A stretch of DNA of 63,325 nt, the filler included, from Octopus bimaculoides (lineage: Eukaryota): assembly GCF_001194135.2 (NCBI RefSeq). It is 3 parts of 3 records of this genome, joined end to end, with 100 filler letters (N's around TTAATTAATTAA, not from the genome) between each part and the next. Parts side by side here need not be neighbours in the genome. Positions count along the whole stretch, not along the records: positions 50,151 to 63,325 come from NC_068981.1; 2 more parts are not named here. One strand, 5' to 3'. The notes beneath the pieces are model-generated. The model saw nothing but the letters and a program-made list of their open reading frames with translations, made no database searches and was not told the DNA's origin. The translations under genes were made by a program, and so were the position numbers. Of this stretch, positions 50,107 through 63,325 are shown piece after piece (the stretch's first letter is position 1; each line of letters begins with the position of its first letter).

Positions 50107-50934
50107 NNNNNNNNNNNNNNNNNNNNNNNNNNNNNNNNNNNNNNNNNNNNAAATTCCCCCCCCCCCATCGGAACCATGTGGTAGGTACATCAAGGATTGC
50201 ATCTCCCCAACTTACACCTCCCCCCACTTAACTTACCATCCTCATCAACTTCTTCGACTCCTTTTATTTATCCTTTGAGTTTACTTCCACTATTTCCTCC
50301 TCCTCCTCCTCCTCCTCCTCTAGCGTCTTTTTAACCATTGACTAACTAAAACTCTTTCTAGGGACGTTTTCAATTAAGCCAACAGACTCCCACTCTTACC
50401 TCAATTTCACCTGTTGCAACTCCAACTACTCTAAATTTTGCCTCACCGTTTTCCTTTCACAATTTTTACGCCTTCGCCTTCGCCTTCTCCCACCACCTTC
50501 ACCACCTTCGCCGCCTTTGCAGCTATGATAACATGCATCGAGATTATTGAAAGAAAATATTGCGTAATATCATACTCGAAAAGTGCAAATCATAATTCAA
50601 CGCCAGTAAGTGTAAAGTTTGTTAAGCATTAAAAAAATAGATTATCATGAAAAATTCTTTCCAGCCAGGGCTCTTCCCGAACTCTGAAAGCTAAATTTTC
50701 TTCTCTTGTTTTCATAACCGGGAATAGATTTTAGTCAAAGGTCAGAAACATCCAAACAAATAACGCTGTTTTTTCCTCCTATTTGAAGTAGCCTTACCAT
50801 AAAATGTTGTTTTCCTGAAAACCCAGCGCTTGTACACATCGACACATACACTCGAACATGTTTCTAAAAAACTTCCCAACCTCTTTTGCTTCCTCTCTTT
50901 CTGGCTCTCTTTCTACCTTGAGAAGAAGATACAT

Positions 50935-51900
50935 GAGCGGCAGGTACATTGATGACATCTTTATCATTACGTCCTCCAGGGATGAGGCCATTAACATACA
51001 CCGGACCTTCAATAACACCAACATAAACATCAAATTCGAAATTGAACATCCAGATGAATCCGGAACCCTCTCTCTACTCGACTTTCAACTCAGGGTCATA
51101 GAAGAAGGCTCCATATTTACCAACTTCTACAGAAAAGCCGCTGGTAGAAAACTTTTCGCCCACTACTAGTCAGCCTTACCCGTCAGCCTTACCCACATAG
51201 GTGAGAAACGAGACTGCACGTATAAACAACAATTGCTGCGATGTGACAGACAAAGCTGTCAACACCAAGCAGTTCCTCAGAGACCTAATCCTGAATGGCT
51301 ACACACAATCTTTAGCTAAAAAACGGTGCCTGAAGAACATCAGGATCAACAAACCCCGGAAGAATCATCATACTCCAAATTCCGGCACATGTTTCCTAAA
51401 GCTACCACATTTTGACGACAGAACTACTGCAGCGATACAACACGCAGTCCGCAGGGAAGGACTCGACATACAGATAGTGCACACCAGCTCTTCCCTGAGA
51501 AAAGCACTGTCCAAAAACAACACCGCTCACTACTCCGAGGAGTGCACATTATCAAACTGCCCCATCAATTGACTATAAATTGTACCAGAGGACCTATGTT
51601 GTATACGAGATCATCTGTGGCAAATGTGGCCCATCCTACATAGGAAGCACAACAAGAAAACTCCATATACGCATTAAGGGACACATGCAGGCAGACACTT
51701 CTGTGAAGAAACATCTACGGAAATGCCAGACCCGGGAATTCACAGTGCTCATCAAGGCAACACAGCGGAACAGGGGCAACCTTAGAATCCTTGAAGCCAT
51801 CCTCATACACCAAAAGAAACCTAAGATGAACAACAGAAGAGAGTTACAGGAAGTTAGCTGGTTGCTATAGCAACACCTTTCTGTGCATGTCCACTCCACA
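50935..51900 (+). mobile_element. 5'-truncated Penelope-like element: RT C-terminal part, linker and GIY-YIG endonuclease; pseudogenised
   Basis: RYIDDIF, LSLLDF, FYRK, LNGY, LKLPHF, Cys-rich linker CTLSNCPI, VVYEIICGKCGPSYIGST...RIKGH...LEAILIHQKKPKMN; stop at 51167-51169 and a 13-bp tandem duplication gtcagccttaccc (51169-51194) causing a frameshift. Confidence 0.92.
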
Positions 51901-52305
51901 CACGCTCACATACGCGCAAATCGGCAACATTCGTTAATTTCTTGAAAATAGAATCATAATTGCGAAATACTGAACACAATCTACATTAATTCGTATATTT
52001 GTTTTCTTTTGATTTGCCTTGCATTTGCTTCATATTGTTCTTTCCTTATCCACGATACTTTATACAATGTATTCTACACAAAGCTTCATAGTATATATAT
52101 ATGTATATATNNNNNNNNNNNNNNNNNNNNNNNNNNNNNNNNNNNNNNNNNNNNNNNNNNNNNNNNNNNNNNNNNNNNNNNNNNNNNNNNNNNNNNNNNN
52201 NNNNNNNNNNNNNNNNNNNNNNNNNNNNNNNNNNNNNNNNNNNNNNNNNNNNNNNNNNNNNNNNNNNNNNNNNNNNNNNNNNNNNNNNNNNNNNTATATA
52301 TATAT

Positions 52306-52347
<42 letters not shown>

Positions 52348-52914
52348 CTACATACTTAAACACACTGGCACATACACTCACACACATTCATTCTGTCTCA
52401 TCAAAGAATTTGTGAAATTGTTTAATCACAGAAATCAATCAAACAATCTGAATCGTCCTTAATAACAGCTGCCTTTAATTGTTCATTGTAAACAAACATA
52501 ATTATTATTTTAAAAGTAAAACACGATACCTATTGATGCCTTGCCAAATACTGAGATGATTTTCTTCGTGATTGCCTTATAAGGAAATTTGCCTAAATAA
52601 TTAATACATATGAAGGTGAGATTTTATTTATATTTACACGTGACGTTAGAGTATTTTATCATTATACTGAAAAATACGTGTATTAAATTGGCGGTATCGG
52701 TAGTGCGTTTGGCAGTATATAGATTGACAGTAACGGTATTGCCATGCATTAGTTAGTTGTTCGGGTTCTTTATGTTTTCATGTTCAACTCCCACCAACGT
52801 CACTTTGACTTTCTTGATTCTGTAGTCAATAAAATATACGACCAGTGAAGTACTGGGTATCAATATCATCGCATCTTTCCTTTCCAATAATTGCTGATCC
52901 TGTGCCTAGTTTTA

Positions 52915-53354
52915 GGAGTGGCTGTGTGGTAAGTAGCTTGCTTACCAACCACATAGTTCCGGGTTCAGTCCCACTGCGTGGCACCTTGGGCAAATGTCTT
53001 CTACTATAGCCTCGGGCCGACCAAAGCCTTGTGAGTGGATTTGGTAGACGGAAACTGAAAGAAGCCCGTCGTATATATGTATATATATATGTGTGTGTGT
53101 GTCTGTGTGTGTGTATTTTTGTGTGTCTGTGTGTGTGTATTTTTGTGTGTCTGTGTTTGTCCCCCCAACATCGCTTGACAACCGATGCTGGTGTATTTAC
53201 GTCCCCGTAACTTAGCAGTTCGGCAAAAGTGACAGATAGAATAAGTACTAGGTTTACAAAGAATAAGTCCTGGGGTCGATTTGCTCGACTAAAGGCGATG
53301 CTTCAGCATGACCACAGTCAAATGCCTGAAGCAAGTAAAAGAAAGTAAAAGAGA
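52915..53354 (+). mobile_element. SINE family A, near full length, with internal (TA)/(TG) microsatellite at about 53072-53158
   Basis: A box tggctgtgtgg, B box ggttcagtccc, body ggcaccttgggcaa...gaagcccgtcg, 3' part ccccccaacatcgcttgacaac...cagtcaaatgcctgaagcaagtaaaagaaagtaaaaga. Confidence 0.9.
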
Positions 53355-54208
53355 GCAAATATTATTCGAAAAATAATGATTTGTATGCATGTTTTCTTAG
53401 CTAATATTTACACAATTCTTGCGTCCTGACTTTCAATCTTGCAGACATTGTCTGTAATAGGTTACGAAAACTTTACGGGCGTAGTTCAACTGTTGTTGAC
53501 TCTGGATTCCAGAAAGTTCTTGTAATTGTGTGCATGCATTGATGTATATTAAGTCTGTTCTATAGCACAATGCGTAAAACGGAGTATTTTAAATGTTTTG
53601 CTAATTATTCAAAGACCTAGAATATCATGATACTTTAGATCGAAACTTTAAACTCTCGAGTAACACCTGTTGTGTTTTCAGCTGAAAAACTAGTATTTTC
53701 ATATATATATATATANNNNNNNNNNNNNNNNNNNNNNNNNNNNNNNNNNNNNNNNNNNNNNNNNNNNNNNNNNNNNNNNNNNNNNNNNNNNNNNNNNNNN
53801 NNNNNNNNNNNNNNNNNNNNNNNNNNNNNNNNNNNNNNNNNNNNNNNNNNNNNNNNNNNNNNNNNNNNNNNNNNNNNNNNNNNNNNNNNNNNNNNNNNNN
53901 NNNNNNNNNNNNNNNNNNNNNNNNNAAAACATACAACCGATGTTTCTCGAGCGTCTAAAGTTCCGTTTCCAAGTATGAATCCTAGATCTTTGAATAATTA
54001 ACAAAACATTGAATATACTCTGCTGTACGCATTGTCATAGTTATCCTGTTTGAAAAACAAACTTAGCATACATACATACATACATACATACATACATACA
54101 TACATACATACATACATACATACATACGTACGTACATGCATACATACATACGTACGTACATACATACATACATACATACTTACATACATACATACATACT
54201 ACATACAT

Positions 54209-55920
54209 AAAAGAACAGAATTAATGTCACCCACACATTTATCGTTGAGGACCTAAAATTATATTCTGGTAATATGATCAACAACAAGAGACAATTAGAA
54301 CTACTCACAACATTCTCACAAGATATAGGAATGGAATTTGGGCAAGATAAACTCACGTACACGATAGTCAACCGATGAAAGATTATCGACCAGAGATGGC
54401 TTGTTTATCTCTCTTATCTAGTTGAAAGCTAGAAGTACCTTGGAATCGATGAGAATGTTGCATACGTTGGTGCTGTGACTAAAGCCAGAATAACAAAAGA
54501 GTATTTCTCTAGACTCCGGAAGATACGGAATTCAGGGCTGTCTATATTTAACAAGACCATATCTCACAATACTTTTGTAGCACCAGTACTAGTGCCAACA
54601 TTTGAGATATTGAACTGAACACTCGATGAGATATGCAGCCTGGATATCAAAGCCAGAAACGTACTGACCACCGCTGGCAACTTCCACGTTAACAGCGACA
54701 CCGATAGGATTTATGTGAGATGAAGTGATGGCGGTAGATGCATAAGGTCAGTTCAAATAGCCTTTAAATGTCGCATTGTATCACTCAACTACTACCTGCT
54801 GAACAGTAAAGAAAGAAATGAGTACATTCCATGCATACTCTAAAGTGAGACAACATCTGCAGAGTTGGAGAAGAACTACTGTGCAGGTACTTTGAGAATA
54901 CAATTGTCTCATGCAACCCAAAAGGGGCTGGACTGGCCTACCTAAATAGAAGCTTGGGGAGAAGCAGGTATCATATCAACAAAAAGCAATGCATGGATGC
55001 ATATCTCGTATGCTATAGGGTAACAACAGCATTGACAGGAAGAGTAGCCTTTCCTGGACCTCTAATAGATAGATTACATCTCACCTAAAAGGATATGCCT
55101 TCGCTATCCAGGAACAGCAAACAGCTGCTATATACCTGATAAATAAGAGGGACAAAGATACCACTTATCTTGCAAAATGTAATAAAAAAAATGTCAGCTC
55201 TGCTATACTAGTGCCACAAAATGTCTGTAGGGTACTACCTGCCCCTGAGGCATGATATATTGCAAAGATCATTTACAATGCTATCCGCAGGAAGGACTGC
55301 GCTGACGTATACATCAAAGGCTTGTCAGAACCGGCAGGTATTCACACCTTTAAAAACAAAGAATACTGTAGAACACCTAAATAAAAACATCAATTCGGTG
55401 CAAACATAACGGACCTGATATAGTTCTATGGGACTGGGAACAAAAGTCATGCACTGTTGTAGAGGGCAGGTGCTCAGCAGATGTGAATATGCATAAGTCC
55501 TGGGAAAAGAGAACATTGATGGCGAATTAATGCGGAACTTACAGCTTTGGTACCCTGACTATGAATTCCCATTTGTACCTATCGTCATAGGTACATTAAG
55601 TACCAACAAATTTACACAAACACTTAGAAATACTCGGTATGACAGAGAAGAGCGAAAGAAACTGACACGAAATTCTCCAAATCCAACCTATTAATGGCTC
55701 TTTGAGGATTTGTAAGACATTCCAAAACTTTTCCATGCCAGATTATGTGAATATATACACACACTTGGGTGTATGCATCGACAGTTCAACCAACTAACGA
55801 ACTCAACCACATATTTACAAACACCTGGAACTCTCTTAACCTAAAAGGTCTAGTCACTTTGTTAGCGACGGCTTGAACTCTCTCAAGAACTTAAATAAAA
55901 CTCAAAGCTCATACATATAT
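54209..55920 (+). mobile_element. 5'-truncated R4/Dong-clade RLE retrotransposon, degenerate, from the RT catalytic motif to the 3' end
   Basis: FIVEDLKLYS, DIGMEFGQDK, KYLGIDE, NFHVNSDTDRIYV, GYAFAIQEQ, YYLPLRHD, CKHNGPDIVLWD, LMRNLQLWYPDYEFPFVPIVIG; starts immediately after (TACA)n at 54066-54208 and ends in catacatat. Confidence 0.9.
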
Positions 55921-56482
55921 GCTGGTTGTCTACACCTTATGCAGAGTTTGACCACCTCCTGTGTCTACACCTTAGCACCATCATGGCATCTGATGTGGCT
56001 TTTTAAACCAGACAATGTTCTGAAAGGACATCCACATAGATTGCACCTCCGATTTGGACCACCAAGAGCTGCAGATTTATGGATCGTAAAATGTTTTTTG
56101 AAGCCTCCGTTGGATTTGCAAACCTTCTGGCATACATTGCATTCAAAGGTGTGCACAGACATAAAGGCAGAATAGTTGGTGGAGGTTCGTTTTCCATGCG
56201 TTCGCAAATGAAATTTGAGCCCAGCAAAAGAAAGGCATGGTCTGTCACAGACAGTGCGCACAAAAAGGTTATTGTCATTCACCTTGTCAATCGTAACATT
56301 CTTCCTTAGATCTCTTTTGGGTCTTACTTGCGTTATCCTGGCCTCTTTAAATGCTTTCACTCCACTCCGCACCTTTGTTCGCCATCTAACTCGATCCGAA
56401 GCAAGGGTTTTTATATCTTCTGGAACCATTCCAAGTGACTTCATAGTAGTCCTTATGCCGTCCTTAAACCTTTTTTTTTTTA
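55920..56482 (-). mobile_element. 3' end of an RTE-clade LINE with three C2H2-type zinc fingers
   Basis: ORF 55965-56507: KRFKD...LASDRVRWR...G...F..AR...KR..RK (RTE C-terminal signature), then (R)TVCDRPCLSFAGLKFHLRTH, CNVCQKVCKSNGGFKKHFTIH, CNLCGCPFRTLSGLKSHIRCH. Confidence 0.8.
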
Positions 56483-56485
56483 GGT

Positions 56486-56612
56486 TTACCCCGACTTTGC
56501 CTGTCATCCTTTCGGGGTCGATAAATTAAGTACCAGTTGCGTACTGGGATCGATCTAATCGACTGGCCCCCTCCCCAAAAATTTCGGGCCTTGTGCCTAG
56601 AGTAGAAAAGAA
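56486..56612 (+). mobile_element. 5'-truncated SINE family C copy, little diverged
   Basis: cgactttgcctgtcatcctttcggggtcgataaattaagtaccagttgcgtactggg...ccttgtgcctagagtagaaaagaat. Confidence 0.8.
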
Positions 56613-59173
56613 TAATTTTGGTGGAAAGTATCGCTTTATCCATTTATATAAATGAATATGCTACCTGTGCCAATCAGTCTTATGCTATTATTTAACACAT
56701 TGACAATTCATATTTCACCCTTATACAAATCTAACAATATATATATAAAGTATTATTTAACCGTAAGTCAGTAATTGGTTCTTCTAGTACTGGTCTGAAA
56801 TTTGAAAGGAGGAGGAATGGTAGATTATATCAACTCCGGTATTTGAATGGTACTTTGTTTCATCGACCACGAAAGGAGAAAGTCAATGTTGACTCGGTGC
56901 AGGGCATTAAACCCAAGATGTTAGAAGAAATATTGAAAGATATTTTTCTCCAACGCTCTAACAATTCTGCCTATCTTTCATCTTTACTAAAGATCAATAG
57001 TAAGAACTGTTCTTTATCGATAGAGTATGAACAACTTATAACTATAATAATTACTAAAGTATAATTTACAGCACAAATCCCTAGGAATACAACATCTGTT
57101 CTCAAAGCATGAAATCGAAATATGTATGAAATATCTTTATAATGTGATTCCATTGATCAAACTAATAATTAATTTCTTCTTACATATATTATTTACAGAT
57201 ATCCTGCGTAGTAGTGGTAGGAGAGGCAGAAACGAAACAGAACATAAGTAAGCAAGTATTAAGAGCTTGTGAGTGCTTATGTACCTTGAGGTAGCCATGT
57301 TTACATGCGATTTGAAATTATTATGTGTATAATACCATTTTAGGTATTATACGCAGAATTTTAATGAGTTATACTTGTAGCTTGTAAATACTCAGACTCT
57401 GCTCAGATCTGAGGTGTGTACGGGCCCCGAAGACATTGGTTAGATTTTAGGTTGTACCCATAAAAATATTACAGATTTCTGATCGCCATGAAGTTATCGT
57501 CAAAGTGTGGGGGATATACTGAGTTGGTAAAATTTGTGAATGTTTTTCTTGCCTTTTTATAGTTTGTACTTTGATAAATGTATAATTAGAATTATGATTA
57601 GAATTGAAGTATTATTTAATTTCCTGTATATTGTTTCTTTGTCGCCAAGAATATTATATCACTATTTGGCGTTCATATACAGAAATACTTTAATATTTGT
57701 GTTTTCTGTTTTATTTAACGTATTTCTATGTTGTCTTTTCTTCTTGCAATCGATTATTAGTGTTTGCAATTGCGTTAAATATATAATATACGAATTAATT
57801 GAGCTTTGTGGTTTGTTTGCGATATATTTCATTCGCTACATCTGTCGTGTAAGAGATAGTTTTGAATAGCAATGGATTACCTTAATATTTCTTTATTGAA
57901 TTTTTAAACATTAATTGGACTGAATTTATTGCGCAGTTGCACAACTTAAACCCAGTTTTCATGTGCAAATATATACATATCACTGAATTGATATAGGTAT
58001 GTATTACATGATGTCTGGCGTTTTTCTGTAATTGTCAAGACTGACCGCTGTAAATGATGTGATTGATTACTTTATTTTGATTGCGTAGTCTACATTTAAT
58101 TGTATCACTGGTCAGCCATTGATCTCTCTGCAGTTAAAATCTAATTTTCTGTTCCAACATTTAGTCTATAACTTTGTGCTCTTGTTAGCTTTCATATATA
58201 TATATATATATATATATACTTACAATTTATTTTTCCAGGCTTATAAGTAGAAATTCAGCAATATATAATATCATTTTAGCGCTATGCTTTTGAAATCTCC
58301 CTCATAAATATATCTTTATCTATTTTATAACAATTTATCATTAGAAATAACTATTGTTATCTTCCTCTTTGTGCATGCTACAATGATTTATTGCAGATAC
58401 TTCTATATTGGATTTTTCTCTCTTAAGAGTACATCGATAAAACACCCTAATAACATAACGTAACGTGAACTGAATACAAACAGATGAATGTAGAAAAATA
58501 TATGGAAAAATTCATGGATATATATATATATATATATATANNNNNNNNNNNNNNNNNNNNNNNNNNNNNNNNNNNNNNNNNNNNNNNNNNNNNNNNNNNN
58601 NNNNNNNNNNNNNNNNNNNNTATATATATGCATGTATGTATTTATATATATATATATAAACACGATGTTGAACAAGAAGTTGTATATAGACGATATAACA
58701 TGAATGAAATATAAGGAAGTAGAAGAAAAGTTAGAATTTAACCAAAATCCAAAAATAACAGTTCGCATCAACTATAGCCAAATTTAACCTTATTCTAAAA
58801 ATCTCAGCTAATCACTCTCCAACTTGTAATGTTTAAATGCTAATATGATGACACAGGTAAAACGTTTTATTGAAGTAAAGGCTGTGACTCAAAAAAGCTG
58901 ATAACCACGTGGTTATATTTTATTCCGAATTTAAAGGAGAAACAAAGAGCGAAATGCTTTTCATTTTGTCATTATCAATAAAATCAGAAAACAATTTCTC
59001 AGAGCACTTGTAAAATCATGTTGAACTGGCGGTTGTCTGCTTTGAGACATCAGAACAGTATAACTTTTCGTTGAATTTGATGTTCTGAAAAAAAAAAAAG
59101 AAGTTATATATTAGGGGGTTACTCTATAATTTTCTAGAGCGCAAGTTTATTTTTAAACAAGAATGTTGTTGAG

Positions 59174-59216
59174 AGTGACTTCGAGGTTTCGGCCATTTAC
59201 GCCATCATCGGACAGC
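59174..59216 (-). ncRNA. minimal Penelope-type hammerhead motif, variant core CCGAUGA, probably decayed
   Basis: minus strand tgt-ccgatga-t-ggc-gtaaatg-gcc-gaaa-cctcgaagtc; stem III one change from the palindrome acttcgaagt; GUC triplet; stem I weak. Confidence 0.45.
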
Positions 59217-59561
59217 GATGCATTAGAGTTAATCTTGGGTTTATATTGCCTATGTTGAGTTAAAGCCCTCCTTATGTCTGTGGGTTTGAGTGGGGTGGTA
59301 ATTAGGTTTCAGGGTGAGTTGTTATGGAGAGGTGTTTGTGAGAATTTTTTATCGATTAGATTTGGGGTTATTGTTTAGAATTTATTTATGTATATAGAGC
59401 TCTGACAGCAAGTGCGTATGTTTAGATATGTCGCTTTGTTCGGTAGGCACTGGATGTGTTAGCAGTTTAGTTATTTTTGGTTTTATTAGATTTAATTCTT
59501 TGTTTGGCAATTTAAAATGAAAGGCAGAAAGTCCACTGTTTGGGACCTTAATAACTTGGGA

Positions 59562-60062
<501 letters not shown>

Positions 60063-60351
60063 GTATGTCAACTTTGTTGTAATGAATGTTTTTAGAGGTT
60101 CACGAAAGAAAGTAAGTAGGTGGTATGTTTTAGCGGGTTAATTTTATAACCTGTTGTTGCTATTATTTAGAGTATTTGCTATTTTTATTTGCAAGGTGGG
60201 GGTCATTACTTGGGCATGTCGCGATGTTGTTAGTATAGAAAATTGTTTCTCTCCTGCTTTGGGGTTCACATAAGGATTTAGTTAGGTGAAGAGTTTGTTG
60301 ATCTGCATGTTTCTCCTTAAGTCTTTATTGTTCTGTAAACAATTTCATTAA

Positions 60352-60640
60352 CCCATTACCTCCCATAATTCTATTAACTGGAATTTTTTTTATGAAACTG
60401 ATTTCTAGCATAAAACAGCCTTAGAAACACGTTGGAATGATCAAAATAACATTTCAAAATAACATTTTAAATAGAAATAAGCGAGATATTAGGTGAAAAA
60501 TTAGCGAACCTCATTTGAATATCAGAGAAATATACCTAGTAGATATAGCAAAAGGGTTAGATATGTGTAAATATTGACAGATAATTACGAAATTTGTAAT
60601 TTTTAAGTGAGCTCATATGAGATCACTGGTAGGTAATGGG
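60352..60640. mobile_element. 289-bp MITE with TTAA target duplication (piggyBac-type)
   Basis: TTAA(60348-51)-cccattacct ... aggtaatggg-TTAA(60641-44): perfect 10-bp TIRs. Confidence 0.8.
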
Positions 60641-61086
60641 TTAATATAGAGAGATTCTAGCCCTTGTGTTTTATAGAGGCTGGATTTGTGGACTGTGTGT
60701 TAATAAATATTTCTTCTATTGTTTCAGACGTGGGCATTTTATAAGGTGTTATTTTAAGGACGGCGGTGCTATTTCAACAACATTAACATGGCAGCAATAT
60801 ATAAACACATACATGTTATGTAAATAATCAAAAAACATCAGCGCGCATATACATTCATATATGAATATTAACAAGCACATACGCACACACCCAAACACAC
60901 ACATACATACACATACATGCATTATAACACAAAATATGTCAAAACAGTAATTTAACTAGTAGAAGATCAATAATTTGTTTAATTCACCAAAATAGATTAT
61001 ATACCGATATATTTTGATGCAACAAAAAGGTGAGCCATAAATTCCACCGCGGAAGCTGCAGAGGATGTCACTAAGTGGTTTTAGAT

Positions 61087-61245
61087 TCAGAAGGTGGGGA
61101 TGCAAGCTGAGATTTGTTCATCTACGACTGGGTCAACCGGGCGAGTGTGAGGTCTGATGCTGAAAGACTCAAAATCTCTTATGACTCTTTCCCAGGAATA
61201 ACGAATATTACTGATGATGTGCCTCAGAACATTCGCGTGATGTGT
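61087..61245 (-). CDS. probable third coding exon: THHANVLRHIISNIRYSWERVIRDFESFSIRPHTRPVDPVVDEQISACIPTF*
   Basis: atatttccaAG acceptor, phase 0, 52 open codons of non-repetitive sequence; candidate ATTAAA polyA signal at 60978-60983 (minus). Confidence 0.55.
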   Translation of the reverse strand, partial: THHANVLRHIISNIRYSWERVIRDFESFSIRPHTRPVDPVVDEQISACIPTF

Positions 61246-61387
61246 CTTGGAAATATATACATATATATAACTCATAAATAAGGGTAAAAGAGAAAAATTC
61301 CTATGCCGAGAAATAGACTTTAAATCGTCAATAACCACATATAATTCAACACTGAGAAGAGTATAATCGAAGAGGAAAAGCCCATAC

Positions 61388-61506
61388 CTCTGCTTTCTTC
61401 AATAATTTCGTTGCCACAACTCCCACTATTGAGAAAGCATACTTTGAGGAAATAAGGTAACATGCTACTTTCTACAAAAAGTACCGGGTTGCACAGAATC
61501 CTTTTT
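61388..61506 (-). CDS. second exon of the secreted Cys-rich gene (119 nt): as assembled KKDSVQPGTFCRK* (stop 61465-61467); with one extra A, 40 open codons
   Basis: gtccttccacAG acceptor, GAG/GTATGG donor. Confidence 0.6.
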
Positions 61507-61650
61507 CTGTGGAAGGACATTCTCTTCAAAGTTTTGTTCTTGTCAGCAGTTTTGATGGCTTTTATTCAGTCACACGGACAATTATATAGTCATTGTTTAA
61601 TAGACTTGACAATTATGTTAATGTAATACGTTTGAAGCTTCGCTACTTAC

Positions 61651-61815
61651 CTTTGACCTCAAGCATTCACATTTGCAATTATTTTTGCAAGCTTGGCTAA
61701 AATTTTCCGAGCACTTTGTCACAATACATCTCGAGGTGCAATTCGGTGGAACTGCTTCAGATCCAACGAAGAGAACCAAAGATATCAGCATCAGTTTGAA
61801 GATTAGATTGTTCAT
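61651..61815 (-). CDS. first coding exon of a secreted Cys-rich protein: MNNLIFKLMLISLVLFVGSEA-VPPNCTSRCIVTKCSENFSQACKNNCKCECLRSK
   Basis: acceptor tatttacAG 3 nt before the ATG (exon starts 61818); hydrophobic signal ending in S-E-A; 7 Cys; AAG/GTAAGT donor, phase 0. Confidence 0.8.
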
Positions 61816-61878
61816 ATTCTGTAAATATATGTATTAACATAAATATTGAAAATAAGTTGGGAAAATGTATGTCTGTAT

Positions 61879-61913
<35 letters not shown>

Positions 61914-62019
61914 AAGACGACGTGTGAGCATTCAGCTTTTGCCGAACGACCTGCACAAATGATTTGTTTATAATGATCAAATGTTCGTGCCGCTCATTAT
62001 CTCAATCTCTCCATCCAAA

Positions 62020-62185
62020 CGACATTGGTTTCAACATGTGCACTGTGTACCACGCAGTGTCGAAGCGAGCGCAGAGCAACATGAAATGAAGTCTTTTGCT
62101 CAAGAACACAGCGTACCACCCGGTCTAGGAATTGAAACCACAATCTCGCGATAGTGAGTACAACACCCTATCCGCTTGGCCATAA
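62020..62185 (-). mobile_element. SINE family B, 5' part
   Basis: tRNA-like head (ggtttcaattcc B box on minus) plus gtgttcttgagcaaaagacttcatttcatgttgctc. Confidence 0.7.
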
Positions 62186-62422
62186 ATATATTTTTTGATG
62201 ACATAAGAACTTATAAACATTTGAGAGAACGCAAAATAGTTCTTTTTTTGGAATAATAGGTGTCGAAGCATACATGAACTTATAAATAGTAGCATGTAAA
62301 TACTGGGTTGTAAAACCCTTTGGGACAGAAAAAGTTGAATGCACGAGTAACCTTCAGCTTTTTCTATTTAAAAGAGTTTTTCAATCCAATATTTACATAC
62401 TATTAGTTGTAGCTTTTTCGAA

Positions 62423-62622
62423 GGCGGTGACCTAGCAGTAATCATTAGCATACCAGGCGAAATGCTTAGTGGTATTTCGCCCGTCGCTACGTTCTGAGTT
62501 CAAATTCCGCCGAGGTTGAATTTGCCTTTCATCCTTTCTGGGTCGATGAATTAAGTACTAGAGTCTATGTAATCAACTACCCCTCATCCCACCCCCTTGT
62601 ACCTATAGGAGAAAGGATTATT
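62423..62622 (+). mobile_element. SINE family C, full length
   Basis: ggcggtgacctagcag...gaaatgcttag...gagttcaaattcc (B box)...tttgcctttcatcctttctgggtcgatgaattaagtac...ccttgtacctataggagaaagg. Confidence 0.85.
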
Positions 62623-62973
62623 TATAGCTTCTTTGTGTACTTCGATATCCATTGTTCCAAAAGAGATATAAAAATATTCATTAATACGTATATATGAAGC
62701 ATATTCTTATTATAAGCAAACAATACCCAGCATTACATACAGGACGAACAATTAGATCTACATTGTATATTTGGGATCGGTTCACCTGTTTTCTTTCGTT
62801 AGGGGGGAAAGAATAGTGTCTAATATATTTAATAATAGTTTAACTACAAAAAATAATTATAACAGTAATTTAACAAGAGTTGCGATGGAGAAATTTGCCT
62901 TTATTTTACATGCAGCATAGACGAATAGGAATAACCCTCAAACATTATAAGATTTTTATATTTTTTCTAACGC

Positions 62974-63029
<56 letters not shown>
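62974..63029. repeat. (AAT)n microsatellite, apparent target site of the adjacent retrotransposon
   Basis: direct reading; abuts RT-coding sequence. Confidence 0.95.
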
Positions 63030-63030
<1 letters not shown>

Positions 63031-63325
63031 GAATTTCATGTGGCATTTTCCAGGGTGACTCACTATCACCACTCCTCTTCTGTCTAGCCTTAATGCCTCT
63101 CTCAAAATTGCTCAATGATGCACAGTATGGTTATAAAATATTTGATAAAAATATAAATCATCTCATTTACATGGATGATTTGAAGCTATTTGCAAAGAAT
63201 GACCAACAACTCAAAGGCCTACTAGCGATTGCTAAACAATTCAGTGATGACATCAGGATGCAATTTGGCCTTGATAAATGTGCAAAAGCTAACTTTATCA
63301 AAAGAAAAATGACAAAAACATCTAA
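63030..63325 (+). mobile_element. 5'-truncated R4/Dong-clade retrotransposon RT, frame intact to the window edge
   Basis: 98 open codons: RISCGIFQGDSLSPLLFCLALMPLS...NHLIYMDDLKLFAKN...FSDDIRMQFGLDKCAK. Confidence 0.93.

Follow-up and report, generated by a model that had tools for sequence, protein, structure and literature searches.

What gene has its first coding exon on the minus strand from 61818 of this stretch of Octopus bimaculoides DNA, and what kind of peptide does it encode? The window, by which we mean the whole stretch analysed, is 63,325 nucleotides (nt) long, filler between its joined parts included, and was taken from RefSeq assembly GCF_001194135.2. The piece that carries the gene covers positions 50,151–63,325 and comes from NC_068981.1. 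An initial annotation, made from the sequence alone, had placed a compact three-exon gene for a secreted cysteine-rich protein with mytilin-like ends at 61087–61818. Database and ortholog comparisons revealed a conserved, spliced minus-strand gene with two coding exons, encoding a precursor of 77 residues whose N-terminus resembles a signal peptide and whose eight cysteines are invariant.

When the 68-residue product of the initial annotation was used as a query, a single cluster was recovered, with 100% identity across the 55 residues of exon 1. The matched protein is O. bimaculoides XP_014779420.1 (LOC106875685, UniProt A0A0L8GNH2, 77 residues), and the cluster also contains its Octopus sinensis ortholog, XP_029640520.1. 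The coding sequence (CDS) of LOC106875685 spans 138,300,164–138,302,963 of CM046601.1 on the reverse strand. This locus agrees with the ATG region of the window and with 60 bases at the end of the piece. RefSeq and UniProt name one protein isoform only. Since both databases hold the gene, as LOC106875685 and A0A0L8GNH2, it was not missed by automated annotation, as had been thought easily possible. The gene and its family are thus catalogued, though they are uncharacterised. A search with gene, protein and accession identifiers, peptide strings and SRA runs found no paper describing the gene or the family within the searchable literature. The best explanation for the locus as a whole, which we hold with moderate confidence, is an NP1-family gene, LOC106875685, for a secreted, disulfide-stabilised cationic effector peptide.

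A conserved minus-strand gene with two coding exons

Coding exon 1 (61651–61818, minus strand) holds 55 codons, which match residues 1–55 of XP_014779420.1 at 100%. The exon starts from 61818 (AAT), after a ttacag acceptor that lies 3 nt before the ATG at 61815, and it ends at 61651 in a perfect donor (AAG followed by gtaagt). The ATG opens MNNLIFKLMLISLVLFVGSEA followed by VPPNCTSRCIVTKCSENFSQACKNNCKCECLRSK, and the open reading frame (ORF) from 61815 up to the gtaagt donor translates to MNNLIFKLMLISLVLFVGSEAVPPNCTSRCIVTKCSENFSQACKNNCKCECLRSK. Sequence features predict the first 21 residues, MNNLIFKLMLISLVLFVGSEA (61753–61815, minus strand), to be a signal peptide. Its n/h/c layout is regular, with K7, a hydrophobic stretch L8–V17, S19 at −3 and A21 at −1, and cleavage would probably occur after Ala21. 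The signal peptide is identical in O. sinensis (dN = 0). The first 34 residues of the mature peptide (61651–61752, minus strand) contain seven Cys, namely C26, C30, C35, C43, C47, C49 and C51, with the spacing C-x3-C-x4-C-x7-C-x3-C-x-C-x-C. The initial annotation had described this signal peptide and seven-Cys array at 61815–61651 exactly. It had also looked to a conserved Cys pattern at orthologous loci, and in O. sinensis all Cys are indeed unchanged.

Coding exon 2 (59016–59084, minus strand) consists of NIKFNEKLYCSDVSKQTTASST and a TGA stop codon and is an exact match to residues 56–77 of XP_014779420.1. NIKFNEKLYCSDVSKQTTASST is encoded by 59084–59019, TGA comes next, and a polypyrimidine tract of 13 T followed by cag lies upstream. 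With NIKFNEKLYCSDVSKQTTASST placed here, the intron must be 61650–59085, and the second and third exons of the initial annotation fall inside it, together with an interspersed repeat and microsatellites. This phase-0 intron (59085–61650, minus strand; gtaagt ... tttttttttttcag) is 2,566 nt long, and the intron of a paralog is at the same position. Only the first of the three proposed exons therefore stands; the true last exon, 59084–59016, lies 2.6 kb further on, and neither the short introns nor the compact gene was borne out. The eighth Cys, C65, is encoded by 59057–59055 in coding exon 2. A likely polyadenylation signal, AATAAA at 58919–58924 (minus strand), lies 92 nt past the stop codon, is kept in O. 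sinensis and would presumably be the one used. A second AATAAA at 58871–58866 is not kept in O. sinensis.

Related genes have the same structure. The O. sinensis gene for XP_029640520.1 has the same two coding exons, and the acceptor, the stop codon and the AATAAA 92 nt downstream are all conserved. In the tandem paralog LOC106875686, the distance from acceptor to ATG is likewise 3 nt, and four codons past the CxCxC motif comes a phase-0 intron. The last exon of this paralog opens EVRLNKENC and contains the eighth Cys. NP1 from a blue-ringed octopus (Hapalochlaena maculosa), a protein deposited from mRNA, is continuous across the paralog junction. The N-E/K motif before the eighth Cys and the eighth Cys itself are common to all complete members of the family. 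As judged by sequence comparison, the annotated model, in which 61651 is joined to 59084, is supported by the O. sinensis ortholog, the tandem paralog and the NP1 cDNA. Exon 1 is 94.6% and exon 2 is 92.8% identical to O. sinensis at the nucleotide level, compared with 86–88% for the intron background. The ratio of nonsynonymous to synonymous substitution rates (dN/dS) between the two species is 0.54 for the real CDS.

The O. sinensis model comprises three exons, one 5′ exon and the two coding exons. In O. bimaculoides, the matching 5′ exon falls beyond the piece, about 7.2 kb upstream of the ATG. We noted that this 5′ exon has an in-frame upstream ATG in both species (MLDFTWYGIRLE and MLHFTWYGIHLE; about 2757–2792 of locus L003 and 10001–10036 of L001, the O. 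sinensis locus). Its use would place 13 extra residues ahead of the signal peptide. Of the two gene models, only the O. sinensis one includes this ATG; the Octopus vulgaris model of LOC106875686 likewise has an N-terminal extension. The orthologous intron in O. sinensis contains about 5.2 kb of extra sequence (L001 15649–20876) and a further insertion of about 370 nt. Because of this extra sequence, the coding exons are 7.8 kb apart in O. sinensis and 2.6 kb apart in O. bimaculoides.

We also considered whether the compact model might exist, if only as a minor isoform. Exon 1 would then be joined from 61651 to 61506 to give a 68-residue peptide with its eighth Cys in KKDSVQPGTFCRK, or would be extended on to an exon ending at 61087. 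The second exon of this model (KKDSVQPGTFCRK and a stop codon; 61465–61506, minus strand) lies within the intron of the annotated model, and nothing in the paralogs corresponds to it. The third is the 3′ part of an 83-codon ORF (61087–61338, minus strand), which is also intronic and has no Pfam or family match. The 61651/61506 junction is canonical, in phase 0 and gives the 68-residue product, as had been stated, and its acceptor, ccttccacag, is kept in O. sinensis. The tail at 61506–61465 provides a Cys at a similar distance, which is kept in O. sinensis as well, and 61650–61087 is about 92% identical to O. sinensis, compared with 86–88% for the remaining intron. However, the annotated models in both species splice 61651 to 59084, and the compact model is absent from both RefSeq models and from the UniProt model, with only a single protein isoform named. 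The TAG stop codon of its second exon is TAC in O. sinensis, which results in a different, longer tail, and the TGA of its third exon is TCA. In the paralog gene and the NP1 cDNA, the eighth Cys is in a distal exon with the N-K/E motif, matching 59084–59016.

Enumeration of splice sites points the same way. Within 61815–61087 (approximately 730 nt), 30 GT-AG combinations yield exactly 68 or 147 residues, so that finding one of them is no evidence. From 61506, only 13 codons precede a stop codon in phase 0, and a three-exon product via 61506 is therefore impossible. An all-phase-0 product of 147 residues had also been proposed. Only one such model has the whole first exon (donor 61651) and the end at 61087, and it needs sites 61523, 61476 and 61317, not 61506. 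The ORF of the third exon differs from O. sinensis by eight nonsynonymous and three synonymous changes (dN/dS 0.76), and the nucleotide identities of the second and third exons are 90.5% and 92.5%. Neither dN/dS (0.54 versus 0.76, with few substitutions) nor nucleotide identity to O. sinensis separates the real exons from these. Nothing supports a rare compact isoform, and it is highly improbable that the compact model is real even in that form. The raised conservation over roughly the initial 560 nt of the intron might reflect a regulatory element or local rate variation. A 60-nt stretch at 61185–61125 is perfectly conserved relative to O. sinensis. The locus illustrates that a plausible GT-AG, phase-0 model built from raw sequence can be wrong where introns run to kilobases.

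The octopod NP1-like family

Relatives were sought with HMMER among 1.84 billion representative proteins, followed by a profile search. The HMMER search gave four real relatives, all from octopods (E = 3e-11, 1.1e-5 and 4.5e-5), and the profile search added one, NP1 of H. maculosa (GenBank ACJ22656.1, UniProt B6Z1Y7; E = 7.5e-31). No squid, cuttlefish or other mollusc match was found among the 1.84 billion representatives. Besides NP1, the family includes LOC106875686 of O. bimaculoides, with orthologs in O. sinensis (LOC115217762) and O. vulgaris, and A0A0L8GPL3, also of O. bimaculoides, for which no placement was found on the O. bimaculoides genome. A further member is an unspliced exon-1 ORF (P0003) on short octopod genomic contigs. 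One more match from the same library, a protein of 226 residues (P0006, E = 2.6e-4) on a crustacean-metagenome contig, was judged to be due to chance. We noted that its contig (L010, 809 nt) carries three tandem copies of ...WHGIHLENMNNLALQCLK..., which resembles the spliced junction between the 5′ exon and the ATG exon of the O. sinensis model.

Eight members were compared; P0003, being an unspliced ORF, has seven Cys only. The family consists of a signal peptide followed by C-x3-C-x4-C-x7-C-x3-C-x-C-x-C-x12/13-C, and LOC106875685 conforms to this array. The eight Cys are aligned and invariant in every complete sequence. The gene structure, with the acceptor 3 nt before the ATG, the phase-0 intron four codons after CxCxC and the eighth Cys in the last exon, is found in the window, in LOC106875686 (locus L002) and in locus L004. 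The signal peptide is nearly identical across the family (M..L.LK.MLISLVL..G.EA), and the loops vary. The core, of 39–40 residues, has a net charge of +4 to +7; in the tail, which is polar or acidic, the charge is 0 to −4. For LOC106875685 the core is +5 and the tail is net 0, and the paralog tails are −2 to −4.

LOC106875685 and LOC106875686 are on the same strand about 46 kb apart, and their O. sinensis orthologs are about 44 kb apart. From the sequences compared, the family is small and octopod-restricted, and these two genes are tandem paralogs. NP1, LOC106875686 and LOC115217762 have the signal peptide, the eight-Cys array, the intron position and phase, and the tandem neighbourhood in common with LOC106875685. 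They are nevertheless only 36–41% identical to it and form a separate subfamily (MVSLTLK... versus MNNL...). The NP1 subfamily has a longer, acidic, His/Pro-rich tail (EHGGFE...NYPH), and CxCxC is followed through as CRTPW there and as CLRSK in LOC106875685. The initial annotation had suggested an undescribed cephalopod peptide family. A lineage-restricted family of secreted, Cys-rich and uncharacterised peptides is what we observe, but it was already in GenBank as NP1 (ACJ22656.1).

Relation to mytilins and the likely role of the peptide

The published mytilin array is C-X3-C-X3-C-X4-C-X11-C-X-C-X-C-X2-C (Greco et al. 2020, PMC7168163). Mytilin genes have four exons and three introns, and the peptides adopt a cysteine-stabilised alpha-beta (CS-alpha-beta) fold with C1-C5, C2-C6, C3-C7 and C4-C8 disulfides. 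When the mature octopus peptide was aligned with mytilin B (sequence from PDB 2EEM), a gapless alignment put six Cys in register. Octopus Cys 1, 2, 3, 5, 6 and 7 correspond to mytilin C2–C7 (x3, x4, x11, x1, x1), and both contain the CxxxC...CxC motif, by which the CS-alpha-beta bridge pattern is defined. The secreted precursors are also alike: each begins with a signal peptide, continues with a cationic core of eight Cys, similar in size, and ends in a C-terminal extension. There are also differences. Mytilin C1 and C8 are non-Cys in every octopus member. Two other Cys are present instead in the octopus peptides, one added within the x11 loop and the other located distally, 12–13 residues past CxCxC. 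In addition, LOC106875685 has three exons in the model, not four, has a neutral tail and is from an octopod, not a mytilid. The resemblance to mytilin noted initially is real, and better than was thought, although the register proposed was one cysteine off.

We rebuilt the mytilin-like hidden Markov model (HMM) from the supplement of PMC7168163. E values reported for the published HMM are 1e-25 to 1e-43 for mytilins and 1e-13 to 1e-17 for myticins; with the rebuilt one, the control scores were 39.5 bits for mytilin B and 42–45 bits for myticins. All octopus members aligned in the same register at 12–26 bits (LOC106875685 at 17.6 bits). The HMM comparison proposed at the outset gave a single consistent register, with scores far below the level of members. 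The nominal E values were 4e-10 to 1e-5 in a single-sequence search. Shuffles of the core that kept its composition reached the observed score in 0.15–1% of trials (p 0.0015–0.01). Measured against such shuffles, the HMMER E values obtained when short Cys-rich peptides were scored with a Cys-rich profile were three to six orders of magnitude too optimistic. Because of this inflation, we set the nominal E values aside, and the same caution matters for any scan that flags "defensin-like" matches. The array, the HMM level of accepted members and the exon count all speak against membership of the mytilins, and the initial annotation was right not to claim homology. The likeness itself is real and, as far as alignments can tell, is essentially one of the cysteine framework.

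Pfam gave a similar picture. The only family matched was Myticin-prepro (PF10690), at 20.3–21.4 bits, below the gathering threshold of 28.5. Without the signal peptide the match dropped to 11 bits, and four of the eight members matched at E ≤ 10. In a profile-profile comparison (hhalign) with real myticins, only the end of the signal peptide was covered, with a probability of 13%. The Pfam match is thus attributed to the signal peptide, given the loss of score and the extent of the hhalign match. The signal ends are alike, ..AGTEA before H in myticin and ..VGSEA before V in the octopus, and C-T-S follows. The Cys array, however, is not alignable, and for local alignment to the myticin A core the shuffle p was 0.1–0.7.

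These results bear on whether LOC106875685 truly belongs to the mussel mytilin/myticin group as a diverged member, which would make it part of a homologous molluscan CS-alpha-beta antimicrobial family kept in octopods. The exact register of six of the eight Cys favors this, as do the CLR/CLK that follows in the LOC106875685 subfamily, the precursor order of signal, cationic core and tail, the matches to the published mytilin HMM at 12–26 bits and the sub-threshold Pfam match (E about 5e-4). Yet C1 and C8 are replaced by two other Cys, the HMM scores are far under those of real mytilins and myticins, with inflated nominal E values, and the myticin match is carried by the signal peptide. Moreover, mytilins are held in published work to originate within the Mytilidae, and the exon numbers differ. 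We consider true membership improbable, and it is equally improbable that octopods carry lineage-restricted mytilin-like CS-alpha-beta peptides sharing ancestry with the mussel mytilin/myticin/defensin group. A shared CS-alpha-beta-type scaffold, reached by distant ancestry or by convergence, is a reasonable hypothesis. A protease inhibitor of the trypsin-inhibitor-like (TIL) type is very unlikely. It is suggested by UniProt, where P0001, P0004 and P0005 are named "TIL domain-containing protein". TIL domains are likewise small, secreted and Cys-rich, the automatic name uses TIL, and the spacing of TIL Cys 2–9 is loosely similar. None of the eight members, however, matched Pfam TIL (PF01826) even at E ≤ 10, the octopus peptides have eight cysteines compared with ten in TIL, and among PDB entries no TIL inhibitor of solved structure was matched by the sequence or by the family profile. 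These PDB searches, made with the mature peptide and the family profile, gave no relevant match at all.

We return to the reading of LOC106875685 as an NP1-family gene for a secreted, cationic effector peptide. Removal of the 21-residue signal peptide after Ala21 would release a 56-residue peptide. Four disulfides probably hold together its core of 40 residues (C26 to C65, net +5). This core would most likely be CS-alpha-beta-like, with the CxxxC pair (C26, C30) bridged to the CxC pair (C49, C51). By analogy with C2-C6 and C3-C7 of mytilin, C26-C49 and C30-C51 would tie the helix to the strand. The peptide's site of action would be extracellular, probably saliva or venom, or else haemolymph or mucus. 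There it would serve as an antimicrobial or defence peptide active on membranes, or alternatively as a toxin directed at prey. By its sequence, the product is most likely a secreted, disulfide-rich defence or salivary peptide. Because of the precursor design and the cysteine framework, the defence mode is slightly favored over the toxin mode by analogy.

A role as a salivary (venom) toxin that targets an ion channel or receptor of prey, instead of an antimicrobial one, is possible but on balance unlikely. NP1, the only named family member, is from the blue-ringed octopus, and we take it to come from a venom-gland cDNA library. A conserved signal combined with variable loops is the usual pattern of toxin families. 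PMC5554399 mentions "novel putative toxins" from a blue-ringed octopus venom-gland library. A 2026 preprint describes short secreted proteins of unknown function from cephalopod salivary glands and groups them into 27 superfamilies. Against a toxin, the dN/dS of 0.5 gives no sign of an arms race, and the Pfam and PDB searches revealed no likeness to any known toxin family.

Several observations weigh against the cationic, disulfide-stabilised effector as well. AlphaFold2 gave a predicted local distance difference test (pLDDT) score of 52.7 with a two-sequence alignment and 46.5 with an eight-sequence alignment; with pLDDT below 53, the fold and the disulfide pairing are guesses. When the Cys were held fixed and the remaining residues shuffled, the observed HMM score was reached in 5–34% of trials, and the likeness to mytilin could be due to convergence. 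The tail of LOC106875685 is neutral, unlike the anionic tail of mussel antimicrobial peptide precursors. A dN/dS of about 0.5, from 14 substitutions only, reflects neither strong constraint nor positive selection. The UniProt label, taken at face value, would suggest a protease inhibitor.

Surrounding DNA and meaning of the locus

The piece consists of eukaryotic chromosome DNA in which microsatellites, assembly gaps, repeats resembling short interspersed nuclear elements (SINEs) and retroelement fragments abound. One SINE-like interspersed repeat, with an embedded (AC)n/(AT)n microsatellite, lies in the intron of the gene at 59570–60059. It is an inverted copy of 52914–53343 with 85–88% identity. 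The O. sinensis locus has many related copies, and such copies also flank the exon in the octopod contigs. At 50858–51870 (plus strand), three consecutive ORFs make up a degraded retroelement. They include a reverse-transcriptase fragment with a YIDD motif (RVT_1, 17.9 bits, below threshold) and a GIY-YIG endonuclease domain (26.5 bits, above threshold), a combination that is a hallmark of Penelope-like elements and points to a putative element of this kind. A 180-residue ORF at 55965–56507 (minus strand), downstream of the gene, has C2H2 zinc-finger motifs with weak Pfam matches and is probably part of another mobile element. Runs of N that mark assembly gaps occur by microsatellites at about 52100–52300, 53700–53900 and 58520–58620, and the "perfect repeats" there are artefacts. 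Rfam matched nothing in the piece.

To our knowledge, few cysteine-rich host-defence peptides are known from cephalopods. A tandem, octopod-only family of cationic eight-Cys peptides that shares six Cys positions with mytilins is thus a sensible, inexpensive candidate to synthesise and test. If the CS-alpha-beta fold and the activity are true, the family bears on the reach of the molluscan defence scaffold. Should the improbable common ancestry with the mussel peptides also be true, a family thought to be born in the Mytilidae would extend to cephalopods, and octopus saliva or haemolymph would gain an unrecognised class of antimicrobial or toxin scaffold.

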